From Octopus sinensis (lineage: Eukaryota): 21,396 nt of DNA. Both the position numbers and the translations under genes were made by a program. Location of the stretch: positions 1 to 21,396 of the forward strand of contig NW_021823779.1 of NCBI RefSeq assembly GCF_006345805.1. Direction: 5' to 3'. The notes under the pieces are model-generated. The model did not search any database. It saw nothing but the letters and a program-made list of their open reading frames with translations, and was not told the DNA's origin. Below are positions 677-21,396 of this stretch, one piece after another; within the stretch, counting starts at the first letter, position 1; each line of letters opens with the position of its first letter.

Positions 677-865
677 GCGTATGTTATATATATATATATA
701 TATATTATGTACGTCTATGTATGTATATATATATATATATATATTATATATACATACATAGACGTACATATATATATATACATACATATATATATATAAT
801 ATATATATATATACATACATATATATCTATATATATAATATATATATATACATACATACATATAC

Positions 866-922
<57 letters not shown>

Positions 923-932
923 ATATATATAC
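533..932. repeat. Compound (TG)n/(TA)n/(TACA)n microsatellite; approximate left boundary of the duplication
   Basis: Directly visible; accounts for the spurious YI/CV-rich ORFs at 457-1053. Confidence 0.95.
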
Positions 933-1296
933 ATAAAATAAAATACGAAATGGGACAAGAATGCAAAACATCCGGACAACTAGGTAATAAAAAAAGGACA
1001 ACAAAACATCCCGAGAGACGATACAAAAAAAACTGACGGGTCATTCGAAACATCTAAATTTCAGTCAAGAACCGGATCATCCTCGCAATCACGGCTGATT
1101 AATCTTGAGAATGCTTCAATCTGGCCAGCCCCCCCCCCAAAAAAAAACTAAGCTATGAAGTTTAGATTCCTTGGAGAAAAGCATCGAATGTATACGCAAC
1201 TGGTACGGAAAAACGGACGATGTTACACCAATATAAATACAAAAATAATACAAAAAAAAAACAGTAACGACATCAACAACAATAATAATAATAATA

Positions 1297-1336
<40 letters not shown>

Positions 1337-1340
1337 TATA
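931..1340. repeat. Probable interspersed repeat remnant ending in an (AAT)n tract (paralogous copy at 12075-12447)
   Basis: A ~350-bp element shared by both copies, flanked by microsatellites. It resembles an octopod repeat I recall; family not assigned. Confidence 0.35.
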
Positions 1341-1700
1341 ACAGGACATAATAACAGGCGTCTTTCGACTGGAGACAAATTGAATTCGTCTGGCGTGTTG
1401 GGAATTAAGCCTTACGGCAGAGGGAAGGGAGTCGCTGTAGCAGTGACCGTGGTCAAACGAAAAAGAGCTAACGGTTAGCGAACGGTCACGTGAGCATAGA
1501 AGAGAGAGAGTAAAAGGAACAAAGGAACCAAAGAGGGAGAGAAGAGAGAGAAAAAATTGGAAGAAAGTTATTAAGGAGGGGAGAAGAGAGAGAGAGCGAG
1601 AGAGAGTGTAGACGGAAGAATCAAGGAGTGGTGAGAAAAAAAGAGATACTGACACAGTGAAGGGCAAAGTAAGAAAGGCAAAGAAATGTGAGAGAGGGGA
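1340..1700. promoter_or_regulatory. Candidate promoter/5'-UTR region: relatively GC-rich block with a TCACGTGA E-box followed by a GA-rich tract
   Basis: GGTCACGTGAGC (CACGTG at 1487-1492; 13351-13356 in copy B) and TGACCGTGGTCA are conserved in both copies. A donor-like AAA|GTAAGA lies near 1668 in both. No transcript evidence. Confidence 0.3.
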
Positions 1701-1803
1701 AAGAGAGTGTGTTGAAGAAGTCGTTCAAAATTTAGTGACCTGTGTACTTACATATAAGAGAACAAAGTGTACGTACGCCACAATACATATATATATATAT
1801 AAT

Positions 1804-1851
<48 letters not shown>

Positions 1852-2556
1852 TGTGTATCATCTTCTCTTTGTGAAAGGGATAAGTAATGGGTTGTGTAAA
1901 ACATATGAACGACTTTGTGGCGATATTTGTCAAAACATGCAGCTACACTTCTCATCGACAAAATCTTACAGCAATTACTCTTTCAAACTGTTGCTGTCAT
2001 CTATCATGAAGATACTCTGCCCGATTGCAATGCCAAGTGCAGGATACGAGATGTGTACTGTCAGCATATTTCGCGGAAGCCTTAAAACATCACAGAAAAT
2101 GCTTTTTGGTATTTATTCAGGCTTCTATATTCTGAGTTCGAATCCCTGCATTTCAACTGTTCTTTCCCTCATTTTTGAGACGATAAAAAAGGTTCCAATA
2201 TTCCCCACCCCCTTTCCGATATTCGTAGAAACTTGAGGTCGTTTAATTAACGTCCAGAAATTATGACAGTTTCTAACACGATTTTTGACCTTAGGTAGCA
2301 ACTGTTATTTGCTCTTTGCTTATCCCTAGAAACTACGCAGAATGAATAATATTTCCTCCAGACATTCATGTCCTTAATAGAAAATGTATCACTTTGAAAG
2401 CATTGATGTCAAGGCACAAAAGCAAAGTGTGAAGATATAAATTTCGATATAGGTGGAAGTGATGTTTTCTAATTACAAATTCAGACAGCTGGACGAAGTG
2501 CACTGCGGGTTAGTAAATATTGCATCTCAAAATATTAATCGAATTGATGATGCTTA

Positions 2557-2676
2557 TACATACACACGTACATACATGCATAAACACATACACACATACA
2601 TACATAGATACATAAATACATACATACATACATACATACATACATACATACACACATACATACATACATACATACA

Positions 2677-2707
<31 letters not shown>

Positions 2708-2776
2708 GTACATACACACATACATACATAGATACATACATACATACATACATACATACATACATACATACATACA

Positions 2777-2807
<31 letters not shown>

Positions 2808-2844
2808 GTACATACACACATAGATACATACATACATACATACA

Positions 2845-2877
<33 letters not shown>

Positions 2878-3048
2878 TCATACATACATACATACACACA
2901 TACATACATAGATACATACATACATACATACATACATATGTACATACACACATACATACATAGATACATACACACATACATACATACATACATACACACA
3001 TACATACATACACACATACATACATAGATACATACATACCTACATACA

Positions 3049-3081
<33 letters not shown>

Positions 3082-3251
3082 TCATACATACATACATACA
3101 CACATACATACATACATACATACGACACACATACATACATACATATGTACATACACACATACATACATAGATACATACACACATACATACATAGATACAT
3201 ACATACATACATACATACATGCATGCATGCATACATACATACATACATACA

Positions 3252-3286
<35 letters not shown>

Positions 3287-3308
3287 GTATTTTTATATGT
3301 ATATATGC

Positions 3309-3348
<40 letters not shown>

Positions 3349-3425
3349 TGTGGATATGTATGTATACACACACACGCGTACGCACACACACATATATATA
3401 TATATATATGTGTGTTTGTGTGTGT
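2557..3425. repeat. (ATAC)n/(TA)n compound microsatellite
   Basis: Directly visible. The paralogous tract at ~14285-14492 is much shorter. Confidence 0.95.
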
Positions 3426-5149
3426 ACCGAAAAAGAGAAAACACAAGGTGTGTACATTCAAGAATAGAAAGAAACGACAGCTTGAGTAAGCAAAGTTTAA
3501 CGGTGGTCAGTGTATAACTAGCATTACACAACCCTCATCAACCACTTTGAACTTTGCACAAGAGAAAGTCTACTGAGCTGTTTGTAAAATACCGTTCGAA
3601 TCTAACTAGTATGTATCATTTAAATTATTCTTTGAGGCTGTATGTGATTAAGTAATAGCATTCGACAGAGTATGTTATGGAAATGATGATGATGGTAGAG
3701 CTTATACCGTTTGTTGCCTGTTTGCATGTGTACAATCCAAGAGAGAGATACCGGAATGATTTACTGATTTTCACTTTACATCTCATCGATTGTATTTGAT
3801 GAAAGGGAATCAGTTGACCCCTTAAGTTTTGGATGAAGTCGGGCTTTTCTAAATAAATTTTTTAATTAACATAAATCGTTTGCTAGGAAACAAGTGAACC
3901 TATTTTGGCTGGATGTTTGTGTTATACGTTTCTTATTATTTTACAAAAGATTTTCCCATTTTCTTACTTTATGTCAAAACATTCTCATCCAACAAACTGC
4001 TGATCTTTGCTACACTGGCCAACTGCTACCCTCTTTTCCATGGAACACTATTTGAACAATTTTGCTATCCGTGGGTTGCTGTTTGTATTGAGTTGATTGA
4101 CCATTATTCTTTGTTTTAAATCGTGTAAATATATTCTGGTTCTGGAGTAGCCTTGTCATAATAGTCAAAACAATGTGTTTTTCATATAGCGTTTTTACTG
4201 GGGGGGGGGGCGTGTGTGTGTCTATGTGTGTCTGTGTGTCTGTGTGTGTCTGTGTGTCATTGTGTCCGTGCGTGAGAGTTCGGTAACAACGCTATATCTA
4301 AAGATGAATGTAGGATGTTGAAGATATTTTTTGACAGTTAGTGAATACTGTCCCGTATTTAGAGCAAAGCCGACATGCATAACCTTCTTCTGATATGAGA
4401 CGTATACCTGGAGTACTTCTTCATCGATTCTTCGCTTAGTTTTTCTTTGCCCAGATTAGTCGTTGACATCCCTCAAAAATAAAAACAATAGTAAGGCCAT
4501 TAATTAAAAGAGATACGTAACATAATGCTCTTCCAGAAAGTATTGTATTTATAAAGATATACATGATAATCATATTTCTATGTGAGGATAACATGACACA
4601 TGTATTCAGCATCAAGCAATTGTATTTAGTTATGTATAGTCGTAGATTGTTAGATATCAGTGCAACAGTTTATACAGTGAAATGTGCTGGAAAGTATTAT
4701 TTGGGTTTAAGAAAACAGTGAAAATACATTTGACTGAGTGCATTTCACATACAACATTCCTTTAACTGCGAACTGACAAACATCTCATAATTATTTTGAT
4801 TGCAGAAATAAAAATAATATAGCTATAGAAGCTAGATATACTTGAAGTAAAAATATTTCATTCACTGTTAACAATATGGGGAATATTTAAGGACAAATGC
4901 TTCGAAGACATCATCGTCGCATAATTTATATATTCACATTTGTAATTAAATCTAGATTAGTTCTATAGATGCAATTAAATTAGTCATATTACTTATTGTT
5001 TAAATTGTACATCTTGGATTTTTAGTGAAATATATTTGAACAGCTCAAAGATAATTGTTACCTAAATTTCAGCTGTAGACTTTTGCTTAATTTCTAAGAA
5101 AAATACTTTTGTATTAATCACTCTCGTTATATGTGTCTATCATCAGGTG

Positions 5150-5213
5150 ATGAAAGGTACCAGCGTCCTATTGTTTTGTGTATTCATTTCATACACCTTC
5201 TCGGATAAACAAG
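5150..5213 (+). CDS. Knottin-like precursor gene A, coding exon 1 (signal peptide MKGTSVLLFCVFISYTFS-DKQ)
   Basis: Acceptor ...tctatcatcag| at 5146, ATG at 5150, donor AAG|GTAAGT at 5214 (phase 1). Basic n-region, hydrophobic core and T-x-S c-region. Frame and splice sites are conserved in copy B. Confidence 0.8.
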
Positions 5214-5493
5214 GTAAGTATAATCAGAAATTTCTTTTATTTTATAGCAATCCGAAATGTAGTGGGAGAAAAGGCGGAAAATAGAAGGGCGGGAAGGAGG
5301 AAAATGAATAACGTTAACTTAACGGTCTTTCGGGTGTACCCCATTTATATGCAATTACAGCTTTTAAATAAATAACTCAATTTAGCAACACTACGCATAG
5401 ACCAAGTATACGGAGTTAAGATTCATTTAATTAACAATATGAATGATACAAATCGGGAAGGATTCTAGTGGTGTGCTCTCATCTCTTACTCCT

Positions 5494-5577
5494 GTATTTG
5501 ATTCAGAACGTAAACACAAACGAAAGGACACTGAACACCTTGCTCGTCCTGCTAACCATTCTGCCAGCTCTCCGCCG
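5494..5577 (-). mobile_element. Decayed 5' head of SINE family B (paralogous copy ~16814-16897)
   Basis: ttcagaacgta...gctaaccattctgccagctc matches the head of the copies at 8525-8743 and 16381-16598. Confidence 0.55.
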
Positions 5578-5958
5578 CCCTTAGAATTCTTAATTATTAA
5601 AATAATTACAGAAGAGATTCAGCAAGTGCTGTATATATAATGTTTCACGTGTCTTTTGTTTGTTTGTTTTTTTTTGTCATTCCTTTTTATTGCTCCTTTG
5701 GGTTTTTTAATCTCCTTTTATGTATAAAAAACATCCATCACTACAGTGATGAGCCATATTTAAGTGTAGGAGTGAGGAACTTCGAGTTCCAGTCTTCCTG
5801 ATCCTGCATCCTGTTTCAAATCGTCTTACCATAAATACGTTTTCCTCTATTCAATGAATTACCTGTTGAGTGATGCATGGGTAATTTGTGTATTTCTACA
5901 CGAAACTTTGGTAAATAGACTTCTAATGCTTTCATATGTATTTTAATATTTCTTTCAG

Positions 5959-6019
5959 ATGTCGCTTCCGTCCATCAACAGAGAGGAGCTTCTGTAGGTT
6001 TAAGTAATATGACTAAAAG
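5959..6019 (+). CDS. Knottin-like precursor gene A, coding exon 2 (propeptide DVASVHQQRGASVGLSNMTK[R])
   Basis: Strong acceptor atttctttcag| and donor AAG|GTAAGA. 61 nt, phase 1 in and phase 2 out, open in frame with exon 1. Conserved in copy B. Confidence 0.8.
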
Positions 6020-6231
6020 GTAAGATCTACATATCTACATATGTTATCGAATTAATAGACAAGCGCCCTCTAGTAAGGTTTCAAAGCTTGTGTCTATAGT
6101 AGTGAGGTCATCAATATTGGCGCAGTTTTTTTCTTCCAACCCATTCCTGATTGTAGTTTTGGTGTAAAAGAGAATATGAAACTGGAATATATCAAGTGAG
6201 ACGATAGGAGAAAATTTTCACGAGTGATATA

Positions 6232-6535
6232 GGCGTAGGAGTGGCTGTGTGGTAAGGAGCTTGCTTACCAAACACATGGTTTCGGGTTCAGTCCCACTGC
6301 ATGGCAACTTGGGCAAGTGTCTCCTACTATAATCTCGGTCGACCAAAGCCTTGTGAGTGGATTTGGTAGACGGAAACTGAAAGAAGCTCGTCGTATATAT
6401 GTATTTATATATATAGGTGTGTGTATAAGTTTGTGTGTCTGTGCTAACCCCTACCCCCAATATCGCATGACAACCGATGCTTGTGTGTTTACGTCCCCAC
6501 AACTCATAGGTTTTGCAAAAGAGACATAATAAATA
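6232..6535 (+). mobile_element. tRNA-derived SINE family A (GGCGTAGGAGTGGCTGTGTGGTAAG... head, B-box-like GGTTCAGTCCC)
   Basis: Several related copies in the window (7813, 8199, 17545, 19481). A/B-box-like head and an internal (TA)/(TG) tract. Confidence 0.85.
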
Positions 6536-6613
6536 ACTACACTTATGCGATAAGCAATGGTCACTATGAGAAAAAAATTAGTTCATAAAAATAGATACTT
6601 TTCACTATCAACA

Positions 6614-6676
6614 CACCACCACCACCACCACCACCATCACCACCACCACCACCATCACCACCACCACCACCATCAC
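6614..6676 (+). repeat. (CAC)n trinucleotide repeat; only a short remnant in copy B (~18160-18185)
   Basis: Directly visible. It produces the poly-His in ORF 6557-6928, which is not considered coding. Confidence 0.9.
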
Positions 6677-7812
6677 AGCAGCAGCATTCTCATTCTCTCT
6701 CTCTCCCTCGTATTCTCTTTTTCTCTCGTTCTTCGCCTCTCCATTCAGCTCACCAATCAACGCATTTGGCTTAACTATATCATTTCTTCCTCTCTTTTTC
6801 TTCACACCTCCCTCTCTCTCTCTCTCCTTCTCAGCCTTACTCCACCTCGCACCCACTCCACCTTCAGCTTTCGAACTAATCTATCTCTATATAAAGCTGA
6901 AGTTGTCTGTGCGTGGCAGGTTTGGTAGCCTTCAACTAACACTATCTCCTCCGAGACCCTGTGGCGCAATTTGACCAAAATTAAGGGTATGATAGAAGAA
7001 GGCTTGCTCTTCCTTCCGTAGAAGAAGAAATTCAAATCGGGCAATGTTAACACCAAAAATTATTTACATCACAAAGGTGCGTTTTTTTCTATGAAAATCC
7101 CTACTTTTTACGATTATTTGACTGCCGTGTCGCCATTTTTCCGTGTATTTCAACCAGAAAAATGTTCACTTAAAGAGGATAAAAAACTACATAATGCAAA
7201 ATTTTTACTTTTCAAAAATTCTAATTCTAAAGGGTCGAAACAAAGCCGAGCAACGCAGAGACATATTGCTAGTTAATATATAATGGGCGAACGAACAAGT
7301 AGATTATCATAGAGATATGTGTTTGCATGTGCGCGTATATTTGCCGTTCTTGGATTGCACAATTTGTGATGTAATGTAACGGTCACTTACACAAACACAA
7401 GAGAGGTTGATCTTCATATTCATATTACTATTTTCTTGGAGAGACAGATAAACCAAAGTAACCAGATTTGAAAATCATATAAAGGTTAAGATTCCCATAT
7501 CAAATGTTATTTTCAAAATGGAGGATTGTTTTGTCTCTTCTTTTGGAAACGTCGTTTTCATATCTCATTTAGGATGCGTAGAGAAGTACATAGGACAAAC
7601 CAACATGACCGTAACAAAAGAAATGATACCACATACAATGCAGGTTTGATTTCCCAGTTGCAGACGAGAAACTCTCGGGTAAAATCTGCTGAGATTCATG
7701 AATCAAAATTTTAACTTATTAATTTATGTCACAACAGTGACGATAAATTCTAACATAGAGGATCTATAAGACTTAGGCTGATTGAAGAATATCGGGGGGG
7801 GTGATTTAAAAG

Positions 7813-8196
7813 TAGACACAGAGGCTGTGTGATAAGTAGCTTTCTTACCACAATTACATGGTTTCGGGTTCAGTCCCATTGCGTGGCAACTTGGGAATTT
7901 GACTCCTACAATAGCCTCGGCCGACAAAAGCCTTGTGAGTGGATTTGGTAGACGGAAACTGAAAGAAGCTCGTCGTATATATGTATTTATATATGTAGGT
8001 GTGTGTATAAGTTTGTGTGTCTGTTTGTCCCATCCTCCAATATCACTTGACAACCGATGATGGTGTGTTTACGTCCCCACAACTTATAGGTTCGGGAAAA
8101 GAGACCGATTGAATAAGTACTTGGCTTACAAAGAATAAGGCCTAGGGTAGATTTGCTCGTCTAATGGCGGTACTCCACAGTCAAATGACAGAAACA
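7813..8196 (+). mobile_element. SINE family A, near full length
   Basis: Same head and body as 6232-6535, plus the 3' part ...cggttcg..aaaagagaccgat..gaataagtact...cagtcaaatgacagaaaca. Confidence 0.85.
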
Positions 8197-8198
8197 TT

Positions 8199-8287
8199 AC
8201 CTTGGGTAATTGTGTTCTACCATAGCCTCGTAATGACCAAAGCTTTGTGAGTGGATTTAGTATACGGAAACAGAAAGAAGCTCGTCG

Positions 8288-8359
<72 letters not shown>

Positions 8360-8481
8360 ATGTATATACTGTCCTCCTAAAATCGCTTGATAACCGATTT
8401 GGGTGTGTTTTCTTCAGCGTAACGTAGCGGTTCGGCAAGAGATAAGATAGAATAAGTACTAGGCAAGTCCTGGTGGCGATT
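8199..8481 (+). mobile_element. SINE family A, 5'-truncated, with internal (TA)n
   Basis: accttggg...atagcctcg...tgtgagtggattt...gaaagaagctcgtcg matches the family A body. Confidence 0.75.
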
Positions 8482-8524
8482 ATTAACAGACATACATCAA
8501 TACCCAACTTCTTACTTCTCTTCT

Positions 8525-8743
8525 AACTATTCATTTCTACTCTAGGTACAAGGCCCGATATGTTGGGTGAGTGGGCCATTCTTTTAGATCGACCCTAGTA
8601 TGCAACTGGTACATAATTTATCAACCCCGAATGGATGAAAGGCAAAGTCGACCTCGGCGGAATTTGAACTCAAAACCTAGTTGCAGACGAAATACCTCTA
8701 AGCATATCGCCCGGCGTGCTAACGATTCTGCCAGCTCACAGCC
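8525..8743 (-). mobile_element. tRNA-derived SINE family B (left arm of an inverted pair)
   Basis: The reverse complement matches 8796-9012 (gagctggcagaa.cgttagcacgccgggcg...gagttcaaattccgccgaggtcgactttgcctttcatcc). Confidence 0.85.
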
Positions 8744-8795
8744 TTTCCCCTCTATCTATTAACACCATTTATTTATTAATTACCCTGACACTAAT

Positions 8796-9012
8796 GCGGT
8801 GAACCGGCAGAAACGTTAGCACGCCGGGCGAGGTGTTAAGCGGTATTTCGTCTGTCTCTACGTTCTGAGTTCAAATTCCGCCGAGGTCGACTTTGCCTTT
8901 CATCCTTTCGGGGTCGATAAATTAAGTACCAGTTATTTACTGGGGTCGATCTATTCGACTTGCCCCACTCCCCCAAAATGTCGGGCCTTGTACCAAGACT
9001 AGAAAAGAATAG
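8796..9012 (+). mobile_element. tRNA-derived SINE family B (right arm of an inverted pair)
   Basis: B-box-like GAGTTCAAATTCC and central gcctttcatcctttcggggtcgataaattaagtacc. Several copies in the window. Confidence 0.88.
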
Positions 9013-9285
9013 CCATATCACTGTCTACATCTACTTATCTACTTATGAAATTCGGAAAATATATATTCATAGACTTGGTCTTTAAAATATACTGGAGAAA
9101 GTACAAATGACAATTTTTGAAAGAACGAAAAAATATGACCCGTCCTATTTGTTTCGGTTCTGCATGCTGTACGTTCACATCCCGTTGGATTTTCTCGACG
9201 TCAATAAAATATAACAGCTTCTTCCCTAACGAGAAAACATAATTTAATGAGTTTCATACTTCACTACAATATTCTGTATTTATAG

Positions 9286-9475
9286 GGTCGCTTGCTCAAT
9301 GGATAATTGTCGCAGATATCTGCCAGTCATTCACTGCTGCCCACATATGGCATGTATTTGCACTTTATCGAGTTGCTGGTGTAGAACACAAAATAAAAGC
9401 CGCGCCACTCATAATAGTATGCTCCAAAGTGTAATCGCTATTCTCGTTTTCCTTGTAAATTTACCAATTTATTGA
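9286..9475 (+). CDS. Knottin-like precursor gene A, coding exon 3: 8-Cys ICK-like domain plus hydrophobic C-terminal tail
   Basis: Acceptor tattctgtatttatag| at 9285. The phase-2 join AG+G gives Arg, completing KR immediately before VACSMDNCRRYLPVIHCCPHMACICTLSSCWCR... Cys spacing is C-x4-C-x8-CC-x4-C-x-C-x4-C-x-C; stop TGA at 9473-9475. Missed by the ORF track because the internal-ATG ORF is only 58 aa. Confidence 0.83.
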
Positions 9476-9604
9476 CGTCCTGCTCTTTTGAATCTTGTGG
9501 ATATATGTCATGGGTCAGATTGTTTGTATAGAAGGAGAAAATCTACTATTTTTCTATTTTGTAATTTAACCAATCGTCAAATCCTATGATAGTAGAAAAC
9601 TATG

Positions 9605-9610
9605 AATAAA
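9605..9610 (+). promoter_or_regulatory. Candidate polyadenylation signal for gene A (another AATAAA at 9851-9856)
   Basis: AATAAA 130 nt after the stop codon. The sequence is AT-rich, so it could be chance. Confidence 0.35.
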
Positions 9611-10121
9611 CATCAAGAGACATAGTGTAATATAAAATATCAACGAGCAGAAGTTTGATTTTGTAATTTATCCTGGAAAGAAATTCACGTATGTTGCACC
9701 AAAAACTGAAATGGTAAAAGAAGAGAAAATCTGCAAACCATAACTTACAACTGTGACTTTTCTTACAAACCTAAATTAATACGACGAACGTATTTAATAT
9801 CTAATATATTTATGTTATTATTCCGTCAAATTTTAATGAAATCTCAATTAAATAAATTTATTAAAGCATTACAAATACTTAGTGCTTCGTTTTTCACTGT
9901 GCTATTTGTTTGTAAGTTACTGAACGGTAACAAAGTCTTTGTGGTTTCTTCTTCGCTGTGGTGTTTGCCTTTAAGTTATCGATATGAATGGTAAGACTTT
10001 ACATTGCAGCGTTATGCTATATTATTGTAAAAACATATATTCTCCGAGTTCTATTTTATAACATTTAAAAAAGAAATGGGAAAAAAATAAGAGATAAGAA
10101 AGGAAAAGAGAGAAAAACAAC

Positions 10122-10725
10122 TTAACCAGTAGAAATTGAGGGGAGAGTCGATTGTTCACATAACCCAGAACGAATAGTGTGCTCAGCTGGGCCTCGCAGT
10201 AGTGACTCTGATGGCTTTGCCGCGAAGAACGTTGCAGCAGCCACTTCCTGAGGCTCATTAATCCAATGGGCCGCCTTCATCCCTCTGCTGGGAATGAAGT
10301 CCAAGAACACCTGAGGTCTTGACGTAACCGGTACAAACTGACAGTAGCCAGTGAGGACCAAATATTTCTTAAATGTTCTCTCCTCATGATTATGGAAGGT
10401 GACACCCGGGTTTGCAGCCGTTGCAGCAAGGTTGGTTCCTTGTCAAAAATATTTAGTGATATTTTGGTGTTGTTCATCGGACAATCGTAGTCGAGCAGAC
10501 AGGTGATTGAATTATGATCGATAGGTGATTGAGTTATGATCACTTATAAATTCGTTTTGAAAGATATAATGTGTATAAGTTCCCTCTGTGCGCTCTGTCG
10601 TTCCATTCTTAAGAAGGCGGCAACTTGATACGATGATGGGTTTTCAGTAATTCGTTGCCAGGCGAGTGATCACGATGTCTTCCGCATCTCCTTGACTGAG
10701 GTTGCAAAATTGAACAAAGTATGTC
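10122..10725 (-). pseudogene. Decayed ORF-like segment, possibly retroelement ORF1 debris
   Basis: GC-richer than its flanks. Minus-strand frames give protein-like text broken by stops and by a 22-bp tandem duplication (10501-10541). Family not recognised. Confidence 0.3.
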
Positions 10726-10734
10726 AAATAAATA

Positions 10735-10809
10735 AATACATACACACAAATATGTATAAATATAAATATATATATATATATATATATAGATAGATAGATA
10801 TATAGATAA

Positions 10810-10864
<55 letters not shown>

Positions 10865-11004
10865 CATGCACATATATATATGTTTTATGTATATACATAT
10901 GTCTCACTCTGTCTCTGTCTCTCTCTCAATATATATTTATATACATATATATATATAATTATATATATATATAAGTGCATACATGCATACATGCATAGAA
11001 ATAG

Positions 11005-11041
<37 letters not shown>

Positions 11042-11095
11042 ATATGCGTGCATACATACATACATGCATACATGCATAGAAATATATATATAATT
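10735..11095. repeat. Compound (TA)n/(GATA)n/(TACA)n microsatellite
   Basis: Directly visible. Confidence 0.95.
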
Positions 11096-11213
11096 AATAA
11101 TACCAAAGGTTAATTTGAAATATTTCCATGACCTGAGGCCTAGCATGTAGTAAATTTACCCAATGGACTATATATTACTCATATAAATACAGTGTACATT
11201 TAAACACAAAAGA

Positions 11214-11848
11214 GGTATCCATCATAGGACTACCTGCACGCTAGAAAGGACAGATAAATTCCAAACCACTATTCGGGATAAAATTTAGAATGGAAAGAAA
11301 AACTAAACATTTACCTTCTTATACCTGGACCAATGGTTTCAGACGTTTTTTAGCAAATAAAATAATTTGCTAGGCGAAGGCTTCTTCAGCTGGTACAACT
11401 TAGATTAAATATATATACACGAGGCAATCCAGTATCTGCCTCGTGCTTATACATTCTAATATTTTCAAATCTACCGCGCAAGTGCAGCTCCCTCTCGGCA
11501 GTCAGTAAACATTGCAGCTTTTTATTTCGAAAATTATCCAAGAAATAATTTATCACTAATTAATAATTTTAAAGTGTAATCTGAAATATTAGAAATTTCC
11601 AATACCAGTGGCCTATCGTGTAAAACATTTACTCAATAGACTAGATATTATTCATATAAATGCAGTGTACATTTAAACACAAAAGAGGTATCCATCATAG
11701 GGATACCTGCACGCTAGAGAGGACAGTCATTAGGGAAAAATTTCGAATGTAATGAAAGTATAACATTTACCATTCGAAATTTTATCACTAATAGTGGTTT
11801 GGAATTTAACTGTCATCTCTAGCGTGCAGGTACCCTATGATAGGTACC
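11214..11848. mobile_element. Foldback/MITE-like structure with ~80-bp inverted repeats (11214-11293 vs 11770-11848) and an internal direct copy of the left arm (11687-11749)
   Basis: ggtatccatcataggactacctgcacgctagaaaggacagataaattccaaaccactattcgggataaaatttagaatgg aligns with the reverse complement of 11770-11848. No clear TSD seen. Confidence 0.6.
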
Positions 11849-11851
11849 CTA

Positions 11852-11852
<1 letters not shown>

Positions 11853-11897
<45 letters not shown>

Positions 11898-11898
11898 A

Positions 11899-11944
<46 letters not shown>

Positions 11945-11945
11945 A

Positions 11946-11989
<44 letters not shown>

Positions 11990-12075
11990 ATATGTATGTA
12001 TGTAAATATATATGTATGTGTATAAATATATATATATATGTGTATATCATATATATATATATGCATATATATATA
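11853..12075. repeat. (TA)n/(TATG)n microsatellite at the junction before duplication copy B
   Basis: Directly visible. Confidence 0.95.
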
Positions 12076-12447
12076 CATATAAAATACAAATTGGAAAAGA
12101 ATGCAAAACATCCGGACAACTAGGTGATACATAAAGGGACAACAAAACATCCAGATAGACGATACAAAAAAAAAGGTCGGATCATTTGAAGCATTTAATT
12201 TTCAGTCAAGAACCGTATCATCCTCGCAATCTCGGCTGATTAATCTTGAGATTACTTCAATCTGGCCAGCCCCAAGGAAAACTAAGCTATGAGCATTTGA
12301 TTCTTTGGAGATAAGCATCAAATTTATACGAAACAGGTACGGAAAAACGGACGATATTACACGAATATAAATACAAAAATAATACAAAAAACAGTAACGA
12401 TATCAACAACAATAATAATAATGATAATAATAATTATAATAATAATT

Positions 12448-12813
12448 AAAAGTATATGTATTTGGAAAAAGTATATGTATTTCTGAAGGGAGCTAACTTC
12501 TCGTCGACAACCATATTGTCACACGCGATGAAGGTAAACCCTTGAAACTCGGGTCCGTGTGTATCATGAGTTGAAGACGGGAGGATGACTCCCCTTCACA
12601 ATACTGAGAGGACACAGATAGTGTGTCTATAGCCAGCTGGAGGAGATATCTTCCTGGGGCTACAAACTACAGTAGCATCCACCCTTAAGGTTAGCCATAT
12701 TCAAATGGTAAATATGCGTCACGATGTGTTACCGCTACTGTTTATAACTCGCTCTGAGATTTATCATTGTTTAATAATATAATAATAATAATATAATAAT
12801 AATAATATAATAC

Positions 12814-12852
<39 letters not shown>

Positions 12853-13095
12853 AATAATGGATAATAATACTAATACTAATTATAATAATAATAATATTTT
12901 TTTATTTGTTTATTTATTTATTATATTTTTATTTTTTTATTTTGTATTAGACATTCACTAGTACAACACAAAAAACACACAAAAAAAAACAAACAAAAAA
13001 CCCCATTATGGCACAGAACTTCCAACCTGTTGTCTCTTGAGGTCTCTGGTGAGACTTGGAGCCAACTTTTACAGACATAAGCAAAAGTCAAACAG
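12448..13095 (+). mobile_element. Copy-B-specific insert: probably two retroposon 3' ends, each followed by an (AAT)n tail
   Basis: Absent from the paralogous (AAT)n tract at 1281-1340. Two non-repetitive segments (12448-12770 and ~12950-13095) each end in AAT repeats. Confidence 0.45.
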
Positions 13096-13124
13096 AATAA
13101 TAAATAATAATAATATAATATAAT

Positions 13125-13156
<32 letters not shown>

Positions 13157-13606
13157 TAATAATAATATATAATAATAATAATAATAATAATCATCATAAT
13201 AATAACAGGACATTGTAACAGGCGTCATTTGACTGGAGACAAATTGAATTCAGCTGGCGTGTTGAGTATTAAGCCTTACGGCAGAGGGAGGGATGTCGAT
13301 GTGGCAGTGACCGTGGTCAAACAAAAAAGGGCTGACGGTCGGTCAACGGTCACGTGAGCGGAGAAGAGAGAGAAAAAAGAGTAACAAAGGAACCAAAGAG
13401 GGAGAGAAGAGAGAGAGTGTGTGCAGACGGAAGAATCAAGGAGTGGTGAGAAAAAAAGAGAGATAGTGACACGGAGAAGGGTAAAGTAAGAAAGGCAAAG
13501 AAATGTGAGAGAGGGGAGAGGGAGAGTGTTAAAGAAGTCGTTCAAAATTTAGTGACCTGTGTACTTACATATAAGAGAACAAATTGTACGTACGCCACAA
13601 TACATA

Positions 13607-13657
<51 letters not shown>

Positions 13658-13682
13658 ATTATATTATATATATATATATATT

Positions 13683-14122
13683 TAAGTAATACTAAGCAAT
13701 AAAGGGTTTAGCAACGAATTGCCTTACCACATACCGATTTAGAAATAGCAGTCAAAAGTTATAGCTATTTCTTCTACTAAAAAGGAGATCTCAGTAAAAA
13801 CAGCAATTGGAAGGCAGACACAAACAGGTAAGAGAGAATGAATTGACGGCATCTATCATACATTTTAAGTTATCTACGGACGTACGTTTCGAAATCAAGT
13901 TTTTAGGAAAGCATAAGAATTAAATATTAAATAATTCTATCTCACCAAAACTTCTTTTCTCTTCAGCGTAGAATACTATAATCATAAATGATTATATATT
14001 GAATTTTGAGATACTAGAAGGCACCAACTCAACTCAGTATCAGAGCGAGCTAGAATCCGCAACTAGTATCACCAAATCCAATGTGTGAATGAAAAGATTG
14101 TGTCACCAGCCCCTTCCCACCC
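13683..14122. other. Copy-B-specific ~440-bp segment between TA microsatellites, probably an interspersed repeat
   Basis: No counterpart in copy A between ~1790 and 1850. Confidence 0.45.
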
Positions 14123-15283
14123 TATATATATATATATATATATTTATAGTTGTGTGTGTGTGTGCTTATGTTTCTGTGTCATCTTCTATTTGTGAAAAAG
14201 ATAAGTAATGGGTTGTGTAAATTATATGAACGACTTTGTGGCGATATTTGTCAAAACATGTAGCTACACTTCTCATCGACAAAAATACACACATGCATAC
14301 ATACATACGTACATACATACATACATACATACATACATTACATACATACGGACGTACATACTTGCATACATACATATATACATATATATATTTATATATA
14401 TATGTATATGCATGTGGTTGTATGTATGTATACACACACGCGCACGCACACACACAGATATATATATATATATTATATAGATGTGTGTGTGTGTAAAGAA
14501 TAAGTGAAAACACAACGTGTACAACTTCAAGAATAGAAAAGAAAACGACAGCTGGAGCAAAAAAAGTTTAACGGTGGTCAGTGTATAACTGGCACTACAC
14601 AACCCTCATCAACCAGTTTGAACTTTGCACAAGAGAAAGTCTACTGAGCTGTTTGTAAAAATACCGTTCGAATCTAACAAGTATGTAACATTTAAATTAT
14701 TCTTTGCGTCTGTATGTGATTAAGTAATAGCATTCGATAAAGTATGTTATGGCAATAAGGATGGTGGTAGTGGCAGAGCTTAAACCGTTTGTTGCCTGTT
14801 TGCATGTGAACAGTCCAAGATCTGCAAAGAGAGAGGATAACCGGAATGATTTTCTGATTTTCACTTTACATCTCATCGATTGTATTTGATGAAAGGGAAT
14901 CAGTTGAGCCCTTCAGTTTTGGATGAAGTCGAGCTTTTGTAAATTTTATTTTTTGATTAACGTAAATCGTTTGCTAGGAAAAAGTGAACCTATTTGGCTG
15001 GAGGTTGTGTTATTCATTTCTCATTATTACAAAAGATTTTCCCATTTCTTACTTTATGTCAAAACATTCAATCCAAACAAACTGCTGATCTTTGCAACAC
15101 TGGCCAACTGCTTCCCTCTTTTCCATAAAACACTATTTGACCAATTTTGCTATCCGTAGGCTGCTGTTTGTATTAAGTTGATTGACCATTTTTCTTTGTT
15201 TAAAATCGTGTGAATATATTCTGGTTCTGGAGTAGGTTTTTCATAGCAGTCAAAACTATGTGTTTTCATATAGAGTTTTTAGT

Positions 15284-15335
<52 letters not shown>
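15284..15335. repeat. (GT)n microsatellite
   Basis: Directly visible. The paralogous tract at ~4198-4270 is interrupted. Confidence 0.95.
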
Positions 15336-15336
<1 letters not shown>

Positions 15337-16214
15337 TGTGCGTGCGTGTTTGGTAACAATGCTATATCTAAATGATGAATGTAGAATCTTGAAGATATTT
15401 TTTGACAGTTACTGAATACTGTCCCGTATTTAGAGCAAAGCCGACATGCATAACCTTCTTTTGATATGAGACGTATACCTGGGGTACTTCTTCTTCGATT
15501 CTTCGCTTAGTTTTTCCTTGCCCAGATTAGTCGTTGACATACCTCATAAATAAAACAATACTAAGACCATTAATTAAAAGAGACACGTAATATGATGCTC
15601 TTCCAGAAAGTATTGTATTTAAAAAGATAACGATAAACATGTGTCTCTGTGAGGATTATATGACACATTTATTCCGCACCAAACAAATGCATTTAGTCAT
15701 GTATTGTCTCAGATTGTTAGATACCAGTGCAACATTTTATAAGTGAAATGTGCAGGAAAGTTTGATTTGGGTTGAAGAAAACAGAGAAAATACATTTGAC
15801 TGAGTGCATTTCGCATACAAGATTCCACCAACTGCGAACTTACAAACATCTCATAATTGTTTTGATTGCAGAAATAAAAATAATATAGCTATAGAAGCTA
15901 GATATACTTGAAGTAAGAATATTTCATTCACTGTTAGCAATATGGGGAATATTTTGGACAAATGCTTCGAAGACGTCATCTTCTCCTAAATTATATATTC
16001 ACATTTGTAATTAAATCTAGATTAGTACTATTGGTGCAATTAAATTAGCCATATTACTTATTGTTTAAATGGTAAATCTTGGATTTTTAGTGAAATATAT
16101 TTGAACAGCTAAAAGATAATTGTTACCTAAATTTCAGCTGTAGATTTTTGCATATTTCTAAGAAAAATGCTTTTGTATTAATCACTCTCGTTATATGTGT
16201 CTATCATCAGGTGC

Positions 16215-16281
16215 ATGATGAAAGGCAACAGTGTCCTATTGTTTTGTGTATTCATTTCATACACCTTCTCGGATAAACGAG
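16215..16281 (+). CDS. Knottin-like precursor gene B, coding exon 1 (MMKGNSVLLFCVFISYTFS-DKR)
   Basis: Paralogous to 5150-5213. Acceptor at 16210, donor GAG|GTAAGT at 16282, frame intact. Confidence 0.75.
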
Positions 16282-16380
16282 GTAAGTATAATTAGAAATT
16301 TCTATTATTTTATAGCAATCCGAAATGTAGTGGGAGAAAAGGCGGAAAATAGAAGGGCGGGAAGGAGGAAAATGAATATA

Positions 16381-16598
16381 TATTTCTTTACTACCCACAA
16401 GGGGCTAAACTTAGAGGACAGACAAACGGATTAAGTCGATTACATCGACCCCAGTGCGAAACTGGTACTTTTATTTATCGCCCCGAAAGGATGAAAGGCA
16501 AAGTCGACCTCGGCGGAATTTGAACTCAGAACGTAACGACAGACGATATACCGCTAAGCATTCCGCCCGGTACGCTAACGTGTCTGCCAGCTCGCTCT
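16381..16598 (-). mobile_element. SINE family B insertion with a 15-bp target-site duplication (AGGAAAATGAATATA, 16366-16380 and 16599-16613)
   Basis: Perfect 15-bp flanking direct repeats; the empty site is present in copy A at ~5298-5310. Confidence 0.92.
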
Positions 16599-17271
16599 AG
16601 GAAAATGAATATAGTTGCCTTAACGGTGTTTCGGGTGTACCCCATTTATATGCAAATACAGCTTTTAAATAACTAACTCTATTGATCAAAACTACGCATA
16701 GACCAAGTATAGGAAATTAAGATTCTTCTATATAATATATAACATTTAATTAACAACATGAATGATACAAATCGGGAAGGTTTCTAGTGGTGTGCTCTCA
16801 TCTCTTACTCCTGTATTTGATTCAGAACGTAAACACGAACGAAAGGACACTGAATACCTTGCTCGTCGAGCTTACCATTCTGCCAATATTCCGCCACCCT
16901 TAGAATTCTTAATTATTAAAATAATTACAGAAGATATTCAGCAATTGCTGTATATATAATGTTTCACGTGTCTTTTGTTTGTCTTCTTGTCATTCCTTTT
17001 TATTGCTCCTTTAGTTTTTTTTATCTCCTTTTATGTATTAGAAACATACATCACTACAGAGATGAACCATATTTAAGTGTAGGAGTGAGGAACTTCGAGT
17101 TCCAGTCTTCGTGATCCTGCATCTTGTTTCAGATCGTCTTACCATAAATACGTTATCCTCCATTCAATGAATTACCTGTTGGGTGCTTCATGGGTAATTT
17201 GCGTATTTCTACACGAAACTTTGGAAAATAGACTTCTAATGCTTCCATATGTATTTCAATATTTCTTTCAG

Positions 17272-17332
17272 ATGTCGGTTCCATCCGTCAACAGAGAGGA
17301 GCTTCTGTAGGTTTGAGTAATATGACTAAAAG
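17272..17332 (+). CDS. Knottin-like precursor gene B, coding exon 2 (DVGSIRQQRGASVGLSNMTK[R])
   Basis: Paralogous to 5959-6019, with identical splice sites and length (61 nt). Confidence 0.75.
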
Positions 17333-17544
17333 GTAAGATCTTCATATCTACATATGTTATCGAATTACTAGACAAGCGCCCTCTAGTAAGGTTTCATGGC
17401 TTGTGTCTATAGTAGAGCGGTCATCAATATTGGCGATATTCCATTCTTTAGACTCATTCCTGATTGTAGTTTTGGTGTAAAAGAGAATATGAAACGGGAA
17501 TATTTCAAGTGAGACGATAGGAAAAAAATTTCACGAGTAATATA

Positions 17545-17772
17545 GGCGTAGGAGTGACTGTGTGGTAAGGAGCTTACTTACCAAACACATGGTTCCGGGT
17601 TCAGTCCCACTGCGTGGCAACTTGGGCAGGTGTCTCCTACTATAGCCTCGGGCTGACCGAAGCCTTGTGAGTGGATTTGGTAGACGGAAAGGAAAGAAGC
17701 TCGTCGTATATATGTATTTATATATGTAGGTGTGTGTATATGTTTGTTCCACGTCCCAATATCGCTTGACAA
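17545..17772 (+). mobile_element. SINE family A (paralog of 6232-6535) with its 3' part replaced by an unrelated insert
   Basis: Matches family A up to ...atatcgcttgacaa. Confidence 0.85.
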
Positions 17773-19480
17773 TACCAGATGAATGAATTTGGTCGAGGAA
17801 AAGTGAATGGAATTCAATAATATATATCTACTATAGAGACCTGTCCAAATTCCACGGAATTGGAAATAGTAAGAGGACCTGTTTATGAGAGAAAGGAGTA
17901 TTCTTTAAACATTCTTGACGTTTGTCTGCATCCATTTCCTCACGTCATCGACTGCATTATTTTTACCTGTTTCCCCCTCTGATCCGTGCTCCATGTCTGC
18001 TCATTCTTTCTCGAGCAGCTTGTAACTGTATTTCCTGGGAATCCAGAGTTGGCCTTTATAAGCGAGCACATAATAAATATCTACACTTATGCGATAAGCA
18101 ATGGTCACTATGAGAAAAAAAATTAGTTCATAAAAATAGATACTTTTCACTATCAAAACACCTCCACCACAACCCCCACCGTCACAGCAGCTGCGTCTTT
18201 TTCCCTATCTCTCTCTCACACTCTCTCTCTCTCTATCTCTCTTTCTCTCCCTCTCAATCGTGTTCTCTTTTTCTCTCGTTCTTCGCCTCACCCTTCAGCT
18301 CACCAACCAACGCATTTGTCTTAATTATATTAATATTACTCACTTCTCTCTACTTCTTCTTCTCTTTTTCTTCACTCCTCCCTCTCTCTCTTCTCCTCAG
18401 TCTTACTCCACCTCGCACCTACTCCACCTTCAGCTTTCGAACTAATCTATCTCTGTATAAAGCTGAAGTTGTCTGTGCGTGGCAGGTTTGGTAGCCTTCA
18501 ACTAACACTATCTCCTCCGAGACCATTCGGCGCAAGTTGAGCAAAATTGAGAGTATGATAGAAGAAGGCTTGCTCTTCCTTCCGTAGAAGAAAAAATTCA
18601 AATCAGGCTATTTTAACACCAAACATTTTTTACATCACGAAGGTGCTTTTTTCTTCTATGATAATCCCTACTTTTTACGATATTTTGATTGCTGTCTCGC
18701 AAGTTTTCCATGTATTTCAACCAGATAAATGCTCACTTAAAGTTAATAACAAACTACATAATGCAAAATTATTACTTTTCAAAAGTTCTAATTCTAAAGG
18801 GTCGAAACATAGCCGAGCAACGCCGAGCGATACTGCTAGTTAATATATAATGGGCGAACGAACAAGTAGATTATCATAGAGATATGTGCTTGCATGTGCG
18901 CGTATATTTGCCGTTCTTGGATTGCACAGTTTGTGATGTAATGTAGCGGTCACCTACACAAACACAAGAGAGGTTGATCTTCATATTCATATTACTATTT
19001 TCTTCCAGGCTAATTTAGCCAAAACTATATACACAAATGTGACATGGTATACAGCTTCAAGAACTTAAGCATTTACTCATAAACAGACATTAATGTTCAT
19101 TTTAATTGATACAGAGGTAAATAAACCAAAGTAACCAGATTTGAAAATCATATAGAGGCTAAGATTCCCATTTCAAATGTTATTTTCAAGATTGAGGATT
19201 TGTTTTGAGTCTTCTTTTGGAAACGTCGTTTTCATATCTTATTTAGGATGTGTAGAGAAGTACATAGGACAAACCACAATGACCGTAACAAAAGAACTGC
19301 AGGTTTGATTCCCCAGTTGCAGACGAGAAAATCTCGGTTAAATTTTGCTGAGATTCATGAAACAAAATTTTAATTTATTAATTTATGTCAGAATAGTGAC
19401 GATAAATTCTAACATAGAGGATCAATAAGACTTAGGCTGATTAAAGAGTATCGGGGGGGGGGGGGGAGATGGCATTTAAA

Positions 19481-20830
19481 AGTAGACAGAGTGGCTGTGT
19501 GATAAGTAGCTTGCTTACCACAACTACATGATCTGCTGAGATTCATGAATCGAAATTTAATTTATTGATTTATGTCACAAAGTGACGATAAATTACAACA
19601 TAGAAGATAACTGGGCTGACCAAATCTTTGTGAGTGGATTTTGTAGACGGAACTGAAAGAAACTCGTCGTAATATGTATGTATGTATGTATGTACGTAGT
19701 ATGTATGTATGTATGTATATGTATTATGTATGTATGTGTGTGTGTGTGTATGTATTGTATGTATGTATATGTATGTATGATGTAGTATATGTATGTATGT
19801 ATGTATGTGTGTGTGTGTGTGTATGTATGTATGATGTATGTATGTATGTATGTGTGTGTGTTGTGTATGTATGTATGTATGTATGTGTGTGTGTAGTATG
19901 TATGTATGTATGTATGTATGATGTATGTATGCATGCATGTATGCATGCATGCATGTATGTGTGTGTTGTGTATGTATGTTGTATGCATGTATGTATGTAT
20001 GTATGTATGTATGTATGTATGTATGTGTGTGTGTATGTATGTATGTATGTATGTATGTAGGTATGTATGTGTGTGTGTGTGTATGTATGTATGTATGATG
20101 TATGTATGTGTATGTATGTATGTATGTGTGTGTGTATGTATGTATGTATGTATGTATGTATGTATGCATGCATGCATGTATGTATGTATGTATGTGTGTG
20201 TGTATGTATGTATGTATGTATAGTATGTATGTATGGTATGTATGTATGCATGTGCATGCATGCATGTATATGTATGTATGTGTGTGTGTTGTGTGTGTTG
20301 TATGTTATGTATGTATGTATGTATGTATGTATGTGTATGTATGTATGTGTATGTGTGTGTGTGTGTATGTAGTATGTATGTATGTATGTATGTATGTATG
20401 ATGTGTATGTGTGTGTGGTGTATGTATGTATGTATGTATGTATGTAGTATGTTTGTGTGTGTGTATGTATGTATGTATGTGTATGTAGTGGGTGGATGTA
20501 TGATGTATGTATGTATGCATGCTGCATTCATGCATGCATGCATTCATGCATGCATGCATTCATGCATGCATGTATGTATGTATGTATGTATGTATGCATG
20601 CATGCATGCATTATGTATGTATGTATGTATGTATGTATGTATGTATGCATGCATGCATGTGTATGTATGTATGTATGTATGTATGTATGTATGTATGTAT
20701 GTGTATGTATGTATGTATTGTCCTCCTAACATCGTTTGATAACCGATCCTGGTGTGTTTTCATCCCCGTAACGTAGCGGTTCGGCAAGAGATAAAGATAG
20801 AATTAGTACTAGGCAAGTCTTGGTGGCGAT
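19481..20830 (+). mobile_element. Rearranged SINE family A sequence (head 19481-19530, body from ~19610) with a greatly expanded internal microsatellite
   Basis: The head matches 7811-7860. The body and 3' end match 8222-8481. Confidence 0.7.
19673..20718. repeat. ~1-kb (TATG)n/(TG)n/(TGCA)n microsatellite
   Basis: Directly visible; source of all ORFs between 19570 and 20776. Confidence 0.95.
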
Positions 20831-20877
20831 TATTAACTGACATACATCAATACTCAACTTATTACCTTCCTTCTAAC

Positions 20878-21093
20878 TATTCTTTTCTACTCTTTGTACA
20901 AGGCCCGAAATGATGGGGGAGTGGGCCAGTCGATTAGATCGACCCCAGGACGCAACTGGTACTTAATTTATCGAACCTGAAATGATGAAAGGCAAAGTCG
21001 ACCTCGGCGGAATTTGAACTCAGAACGTAGCGGCAGACGAAATACCTCTAAGCATATCGCACGGCGTACTAACGATTCTGCCAGCTCACAGCC
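20878..21093 (-). mobile_element. SINE family B, left arm of an inverted pair (paralog of 8525-8743)
   Basis: Colinear with copy A. Confidence 0.85.
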
Positions 21094-21145
21094 TTTCCCT
21101 TATAACTATTAAAACCATTTATTTATTAATTACCCTGTCACTAAG

Positions 21146-21368
21146 TCGGTGAACCGGCAGAAACGTTAGCACGCCGGACGAGGTGTCAAGCGGTATTTCG
21201 TCTGTCTCTACGTTCTGAGTTCAATTCCGCCGAGGTCGACTTTGCCTTTCATCCTTTCGGGGTCGATAAATTAAGAACCAATTGTTTACTGGGGTCGATC
21301 TATTCGACTGGCCCCCTCCCCCCCCCAAAAAAAAATTTCGGGCCTTGTGCCAAGAGTAGAAAAGAATT
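21146..21368 (+). mobile_element. SINE family B, right arm of an inverted pair (paralog of 8796-9012)
   Basis: Colinear with copy A. Confidence 0.85.
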
Positions 21369-21396
21369 ACCATATCGCTGTCTACATCTACTCATC

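Follow-up and report, generated by a model that had tools for sequence, protein, structure and literature searches.

A tandemly duplicated three-exon gene for a knottin-like peptide with a conserved hydrophobic tail in Octopus sinensis

The Duplicated Locus

The stretch of DNA analysed in this work, from now on the window, comprises 21,396 nucleotides of Octopus sinensis (positions 1 to 21,396 of contig NW_021823779.1, assembly GCF_006345805.1) and contains two head-to-tail copies, units A and B, of a segment of ~11.1 kb, as revealed by a blastn comparison of the window halves. Unit A (936-11853, + strand) is complete and holds the whole of a three-exon gene, gene A, plus ~2.4 kb downstream of it, whereas unit B (12082-21396, +) is cut by the window end at the equivalent of position 9039 of A. 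Each unit would carry a gene of a lineage-restricted family, in which exon 1 encodes a signal peptide, exon 2 a propeptide reaching to a Lys-Arg site, and exon 3 a domain with eight cysteines (8-Cys) followed by a tail. We are confident that the tandem duplication is genuine and that what it copied is a real knottin-like gene of three exons, belonging to a family of octopus genes.

The two units align in nine colinear plus-strand blocks, which join A 710-9039 with B 11850-21396 at 84-90% identity. The final block pairs A 8314-9039 with B 20662-21396, so that base 21396 corresponds exactly to A 9039, as the initial annotation of this DNA had proposed. Once microsatellites were removed and the blocks realigned one by one, 6,099 nt could be compared, with a substitution identity of 91.7%, a Kimura two-parameter distance (K2P) of 0.088 and a transition/transversion ratio of 0.79. 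Private segments and indels make the offset between A and B rise along the alignment from 11,140 to 12,357 nt. Unit A has a segment of its own of 1.26 kb (1964-3225), holding an (ATAC)n array delimited at 2556-3285 by Tandem Repeats Finder (TRF) and alignment, and unit B has four, of 689, 491, 220 and 316 nt. Moreover, a (TATG)n array in intron 2 of B (19673-20718; same methods) represents an expansion of ~1 kb.

The boundaries of the units are marked by simple repeats, also delimited by TRF: a (TA)n microsatellite (580-935) directly precedes unit A, and an (AT)n microsatellite (11854-12081) lies at the A/B junction and directly precedes unit B. Since each unit starts right after a (TA)n array, A is taken as 936-11853 and B as running from 12082 to a point past the window; the start at 931 originally given falls at the end of the 580-935 array. 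A sensitive blastn search detected no second copy of A 9040-11853 within the window, which is to be expected if its counterpart in B lies past base 21396. The same search found no counterpart of the left flank (1-530) upstream of unit B, and therefore no third unit adjoins on the left, where the suggestion of more flanking units has to be dropped. In the simplest route, a segment bounded by (TA)n microsatellites would have been duplicated head-to-tail by unequal exchange or slippage at the microsatellite, after which the copies would have diverged by ~9% and acquired private insertions. In the inter-gene part of unit A, before the A/B junction, there is also a 132-nt direct repeat of 87% identity (11122-11253 and 11595-11726).

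Structure of the Two Genes

Exon 1 of gene A (5150-5213, +), found by a scan for signal-peptide-like open reading frames (ORFs) together with its B counterpart at 16218, starts with the ATG, encodes the signal peptide MKGTSVLLFCVFISYTFSDKQ and ends in phase 1 at the donor AAG/GTAAGT. Exon 2 (5959-6019, +) encodes the propeptide D-VASVHQQRGASVGLSNMTK between a tttcAG acceptor and an AG/GTAAGA donor in phase 2; in both units it was placed by tblastn with two related proteins, P0001 and P0003, described below. Exon 3 (9286-9475, +) completes the Lys-Arg site and encodes the 8-Cys domain and a 30-residue tail up to a TGA stop at 9473-9475. It reads VACSMDNCRRYLPVIHCCPHMACICTLSSCWC..., followed by the tail RTQNKSRATHNSMLQSVIAILVFLVNLPIY, which is hydrophobic at its end. 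The acceptor of exon 3, tttatAG, occupies 9284-9285, and the exon thus begins 247 nt past position 9039, just as had been anticipated. Splicing of the three exons gives an open frame of 104 amino acids, MKGTSVLLFCVFISYTFSDKQ / DVASVHQQRGASVGLSNMTK / RVACSMDNC...LPIY, where the phases fit throughout (phase 1 at the end of exon 1 and phase 2 at that of exon 2, with the third base coming from exon 3) and the Lys-Arg site is created across the exon 2/3 junction. A probable 3' untranslated region follows (9476-10069, +, with an AATAAA at 9605), and what follows exon 3 in two paralogues of Octopus bimaculoides matches this region at 85-88% identity.

The cysteines of gene A are arranged as C-x4-C-x8-CC-x4-C-x-C-x4-C-x-C (spacing 4,8,0,4,1,4,1). 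Translated in six frames, the window shows this framework a single time, and 300 shuffles gave no instance of it. Exon 3 is the sole Cys-rich ORF of the window that is not a microsatellite translation.

In unit B, exon 1 (16218-16281, +; MKGNSVLLFCVFISYTFSDKR, donor GAG/GTAAGT) and exon 2 (17272-17332, +; D-VGSIRQQRGASVGLSNMTK, with the same tttcAG acceptor and AG/GTAAGA donor as in A) are intact. Between the two genes, exons 1 and 2 differ at 8 of 125 nt, five of the changes being non-synonymous and three synonymous. With a terminal offset of 12,357 nt between A and B, exon 3 of gene B is predicted to start at ~21643, some 250 nt past the window end. Exact searches aimed at the sequence past this end, with two ORFs of the window and with a 43-mer scanned against metagenome contigs, gave no match. 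An exon 3 homologue probably lies there, and it is also probable, to a lesser degree, that it is intact. In this regard, the microsatellite at the junction also precedes unit A, and the simplest event would therefore have copied all of 936-11853, exon 3 included. Moreover, B stays colinear with A to the last base of the window, through an ancestral inverted pair of short interspersed nuclear elements (SINEs) that is directly followed by exon 3 in both complete genes where it is found (gene A and LOC128250516 of O. bimaculoides), and all four B splice sites are intact.

A Gene Family in Octopus bimaculoides

When exon 3 alone was used as a query, a word-indexed protein search gave no match, and an exhaustive HMMER search recovered P0001 and P0003, each with a signal peptide, a propeptide, the 8-Cys domain and the tail. 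A further match of the exhaustive search, an ankyrin-repeat protein of 1672 residues (P0002), was rejected as spurious, with only 'WCRT...' repeats and the tail matching. The full precursor and then the family alignment led to 8 matching proteins only in a collection of 5.8 billion, all of them 'uncharacterized' products of O. bimaculoides (LOC128250513/514/516/517/536/541, CM046622.1, GCA_001194135.2) that carry neither a name nor a domain nor a publication.

The relatives share with the window genes a signal peptide of the form MKGxSVLLFCxFISY on its own exon with a phase-1 donor, the propeptide, eight invariant Cys in the same spacing class, and a 30-residue tail that ends in ...FLVNLPxY, the stop falling at the same place. 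The genes likewise have three exons and are clustered in tandem, with intron DNA identities of 81-88%, and their exon 1 is 90-95% identical to exon 1 of A and B. On the other hand, the window genes are identical to none of them, amino acid identities being 52-59%, and exon 3 of A lacks the N-terminal 'SDKxKR' stretch of the O. bimaculoides relatives, the KR being re-created across the exon 2/3 junction.

Five overlapping loci of O. bimaculoides, covering CM046622.1 29,174,124-29,265,230 (91 kb) and leaving aside the LOC128250536 and LOC128250541 loci, were compared with the window. The window sequence is not within that stretch, where the best DNA identity is 81-88%; as A and B are more alike than this, the duplication that produced them postdates the split from those loci. 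The cluster comprises five complete three-exon genes in ~70 kb, in both orientations and spaced 11-17 kb apart, which is the same scale as the window unit. Exon copies are more numerous than genes: the stretch has nine copies of exon 3 (one interrupted by a stop in frame, and two lying unannotated beside the terminal exon of LOC128250514) and six of exon 1, two of which belong to LOC128250516.

Some of these loci have peculiarities of their own. At LOC128250514, three tandem 8-Cys terminal exons (21893-22120, 22842-23087 and 26880-27101 in locus coordinates) lie behind one exon 1/2 cassette, and the annotated product makes use of just one. The three may be mutually exclusive exons or unannotated orphans. 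The signal-peptide exon of LOC128250516 is present twice (6402-6467 and 10001-10066, locus coordinates), ~3.6 kb apart and with an identical coding part, which means that the 5' part of a gene can be duplicated on its own as well. LOC128250513 contains, between its exons 2 and 3, a decayed copy of exon 3 (53612-53776 of the merged 80-kb stretch, - strand) with a stop in frame and its Cys pattern broken up, and exon 3 relics therefore persist in the cluster. Finally, the annotated isoforms of LOC128250541 have exons 1 and 2 in common and differ in their 8-Cys terminal exons. In isoform X2 (P0009) the alternative terminal exon keeps eight Cys, with a charged C-terminus replacing the hydrophobic tail, and could thus provide an untethered isoform from the same promoter.

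Predicted Fold of the Cysteine-Rich Domain

The Cys framework of exon 3 has the minimum expected of a knottin, that is, at least six Cys arranged as C-C-CC-C-C with compatible loop lengths. A search of all Protein Data Bank (PDB) sequences with the family profile gave nine weak matches (E 0.18-6), all of them cystine-knot toxins, eight from spiders and one from a cone snail. They include purotoxin-1, mu- and omega-agatoxins, U4-agatoxin, delta-palutoxins and conotoxin GS, and are aligned on the motif CC-x4-C-x-C-xn-C-x-C.

An AlphaFold2 model of exon 3, built with an alignment of nine sequences, reached a predicted local distance difference test score (pLDDT) of 70 and presents a beta-hairpin carrying the CxC...CxC pairs, followed by a C-terminal helix over the tail. 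Its best three Foldseek matches were all cystine-knot peptides, the C-terminal domain of ASIP, ACTX-Hi:OB4219 and J-atracotoxin-Hv1c, with target-normalised template modelling (TM) scores of 0.57-0.67, root-mean-square deviations of 2.4-3.0 Å and E values of ~1. A replicate model, made with full-length P0005, had a pLDDT of 56 and the same topology, and cystine-knot peptides likewise made up most of its Foldseek matches (ACTX-Hi:OB4219, tachystatin A, double-knot toxin, agelenin, palutoxins, psalmotoxin and leginsulin). Over the two models, TM scores were 0.55-0.67 at E 0.3-1.2. Framework and predicted fold both fit a domain that may fold as a knottin. A Ly6/uPAR three-finger domain, which was considered because of the tail, was rejected, since four Cys follow the CC pair.

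Variable Loops and a Conserved Tail

The eight Cys columns are invariant in 8-9 family sequences, which follow the pattern C-x4-C-x8/10-CC-x4-C-x-C-x4-6-C-x-C, and gene A fits it. Between these fixed points the sequences vary widely: among eight DNA copies of exon 3, the pooled proportion of non-synonymous differences (pN) in the inter-Cys loops was 0.61 against a synonymous proportion (pS) of 0.47, pairwise counts of this kind being saturated and alignment-sensitive in the loops. The hypervariable loops that had been expected at the outset are thus borne out in the family. For the tail, the corresponding values were a pN of 0.22 and a pS of 0.27. In the youngest pair of exon 3 copies, which lie ~1 kb apart at the LOC128250514 locus, the loops had pN 0.45 and pS 0.10, and the tails pN 0.04 and pS 0. 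No part of exon 3 is conserved better than the tail, whose length is constant (30 residues, 28 in one member); gene conversion of the tail could also account for the pattern.

As for its composition, the tail consists of a polar stretch of 11-12 residues and then ~18 hydrophobic residues up to the C-terminus, with a Kyte-Doolittle hydropathy (KD15) of up to 2.5 and a predicted helix. A conserved tail with this 18-residue hydrophobic end is present in all seven tail-bearing members. Venom peptides of the inhibitor cystine knot (ICK) type end near their last Cys, without a C-terminal hydrophobic segment, and the octopus family departs from them in this respect. Its layout of signal peptide, polar spacer and C-terminal hydrophobic segment would rather fit surface proteins that are tethered or linked to glycosylphosphatidylinositol (GPI), a likeness of composition in which the omega site is not confidently assignable.

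Repeats and Flanking Sequence

The SINE-like element of the window, of ~160-220 nt and with a core ...GGGGTCGATAAATTAAGTACCAGT..., is present in five copies, and the O. bimaculoides loci contain many more, 83-94% identical. Neither ARAGORN nor Rfam recognised a tRNA or other RNA head in it, and for this reason the SINEs are not tied to any tRNA. One copy was inserted after the duplication in intron 1 of B (16379-16598, - strand; element copy 16440-16593), where a 13-bp target-site duplication, AGGAAAATGAATA, lies on either side of it (16366-16378 and 16599-16611), the empty site being A 5298-5310. The other four form the inverted pairs mentioned above, one in intron 2 of A shortly upstream of exon 3 (8584-8961, with 8584-8737 on the + and 8806-8961 on the - strand) and one in intron 2 of B at the window end (20934-21320, with 20934-21087 on the + and 21156-21309 on the - strand). 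Such a pair is common to A, B and intron 2 of LOC128250516, and is therefore ancestral.

A second repeat family, of ~175-250 nt, occurs in intron 2 of A at 6269-6442 and 7851-8024 (extending to ~8105) and in B at 17582-17755; the extra A copy falls in A 7861-8313, a segment without a simple B counterpart. Intron 2 of gene A also contains an ORF of 123 residues (6557-6928, +) with a run of ~21 His derived from (CAY)n, whose position is kept in B (~18260) and which is most likely non-coding low complexity. Outside the duplication, translation and inspection of the left flank (1-530, - strand) suggest decayed ORF fragments of a non-LTR (long terminal repeat) retrotransposon, resembling the region upstream of the reverse transcriptase (e.g., ...ILNEQFQNVFTTP...). 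These fragments had no match in Pfam or in the retrieved O. bimaculoides loci.

Alternative Readings of the Locus

The Cys-rich ORF at 9286-9475 could in principle be a chance ORF or a repeat-derived artefact rather than an exon, in a window where (TG/TA) microsatellites give rise to many Cys-rich pseudo-ORFs. This ORF, however, is not low-complexity, its framework has no second occurrence in the window and none in the 300 shuffles, annotated O. bimaculoides proteins match it from end to end, down to the tail and the place of the stop, and its splice phase closes the frame with exons 1 and 2, all of which leaves such an origin with a negligible probability. It is also very unlikely that A and B are allelic haplotypes misassembled in tandem, an idea that draws on the general risk of this error in repeat-rich invertebrate assemblies and on nothing further. 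Against it stand a K2P of 0.088 over 6.1 kb, kb-scale private segments together with differing microsatellite expansions, a SINE with its target-site duplication in B facing an empty site in A, a left flank of A that is not repeated before B, and the true array of such genes that O. bimaculoides has independently. Altogether, divergence and structural differences are well above the allelic level, and speak for A and B as paralogues. A more serious contender is that unit B is a partial or decayed duplicate whose exon 3 is missing, truncated or pseudogenised, leaving one gene plus a gene fragment and no functional array. The fluid exon copy number of the O. bimaculoides cluster, with its stop-bearing exon 3 relic, orphan exon 3 copies and duplicated exon 1, speaks for it, as does the ratio of five non-synonymous to three synonymous changes in exons 1 and 2. 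This is unlikely in our opinion given the colinearity of B to its last base, through the SINE pair found ahead of exon 3 in A and LOC128250516, the four intact splice sites, and the junction (AT)n at 11854-12081, which implies that the whole of 936-11853 was copied. Nevertheless, single-exon duplication is also active in the cluster, and any extrapolation from the array to a complete gene B is therefore tempered.

The reading that we prefer, a true tandem duplication of a knottin-like gene of an octopus family, has to face several points that weigh against it. The products of genes A and B have no annotated protein of their own in the 5.8 billion proteins of the collection. No curated family was recovered when the peptide and seven other ORFs of the window were compared with Pfam at E <= 1, where a spurious DUF was the only match, and no known knottin was matched significantly (E of at least 0.18 in the PDB search and at least 0.3 with Foldseek, with moderate model confidence). 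Gene B is read from exons 1 and 2, its exon 3 position falling outside the window, and the changes between A and B in these two exons give no clear sign of purifying selection. The uneven exon copy numbers of O. bimaculoides indicate that partial duplicates and decayed exons do occur, and the role proposed for the tail derives from its composition. In consequence, the array of knottin genes put forward in the initial annotation holds in so far as a real three-exon 8-Cys gene has been duplicated, exons 1 and 2 of B are intact and O. bimaculoides has such an array, but the term 'knottin' itself comes from the predicted structure and the Cys framework.

With regard to function, we tentatively favour that the tail may be a GPI-attachment or membrane-anchor signal, and the product a knottin-like domain tethered to the cell surface, where the tail would display it. 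Tandem duplication, duplication of exon 3 and alternative terminal exons would then be the sources of diversity. Somewhat more doubtful, yet a possibility to be taken seriously, is that the products are soluble secreted knottins for venom, defence or antimicrobial use, from which the tail is removed as a C-terminal propeptide or sorting signal. The signal peptide, propeptide and dibasic site are consistent with this role, and so are the hypervariable loops on a Cys scaffold with loop pN above pS, the tandem expansion of the genes, structural neighbours that comprise toxins and one antimicrobial knottin (tachystatin A), and the LOC128250541 isoform P0009, whose 8-Cys exon lacks the hydrophobic tail. 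However, the tail is conserved more strongly than the rest of exon 3 and keeps a constant length, which is unexpected for a disposable propeptide; it is absent from the matched spider and cone-snail knottins, no conotoxin or other toxin family of Pfam was matched, and no report was found in the octopus venom or salivary literature searched. Other roles would account for the probability that remains beside tethered and soluble products. The toxin or defence framing that had been given to the locus thus finds no homology support, and the conserved hydrophobic tail is atypical of venom knottins.

Relation to Known Cysteine-Rich Peptides

Tandemly expanding genes for hypervariable Cys-rich peptides are well known in cone snails, spiders and other venomous animals. 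A close scaffold is that of the 8-Cys ICK toxins of spiders, of the agatoxin, purotoxin, palutoxin and atracotoxin types, which share with the octopus domain the arrangement C-C-CC-C-x-C-...-C-x-C, with an extra CxC...CxC pair on the beta-hairpin. These toxins have no significant sequence similarity to the octopus peptides (E >= 0.18), belong to another phylum and gene family and lack the 30-residue tail, and the likeness of the scaffolds is most likely convergent. Conotoxin genes consist of three exons, for the signal, the propeptide and the mature Cys-rich peptide, separated by long introns. The conotoxin superfamilies resemble the octopus family in this three-exon layout, the conserved signal, the hypervariable loops and the expansion by duplication, but differ in that no conotoxin family of Pfam was matched, conotoxin GS appearing weakly in the PDB profile search, and in the hydrophobic tail and annotated alternative terminal exons of the octopus genes.

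Other parallels come from endogenous proteins. ASIP, of the agouti type, was the top Foldseek match of the gene A domain, an indication that endogenous signalling ligands use this fold; it differs in having ten Cys and no anchor. Lynx1-type proteins provide a precedent for a toxin-like Cys-rich domain that is tethered to the membrane by a C-terminal signal. Since Ly6/Lynx1 proteins have three-finger folds and are not knottins, the likeness would be limited to the mode of action. By analogy, octopods might possess lineage-specific membrane-tethered knottins, anchored by GPI or by the tail and acting as endogenous 'prototoxins' on ion channels or receptors of their own or neighbouring cells, diversified by gene duplication, terminal-exon duplication and alternative exons, with some of them untethered, although we consider this broader proposal speculative and rather improbable as a whole.

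No description of an octopus knottin family, or of any such peptide family in cephalopods, was found in the literature searched, and the genes reported here apparently represent an undescribed, octopod-restricted variant of the theme of tandemly expanding Cys-rich peptides. What sets this variant apart is a conserved hydrophobic tail on a knottin-like domain, and a single signal/propeptide cassette that serves several alternative Cys-rich terminal exons. For the O. sinensis assembly, the analysis provides a precise and falsifiable annotation of two unannotated genes. For the biology of the octopus, the family would offer a tidy system in which to follow how peptide diversity is generated, as well as a possible source of new ligands for channels or receptors.

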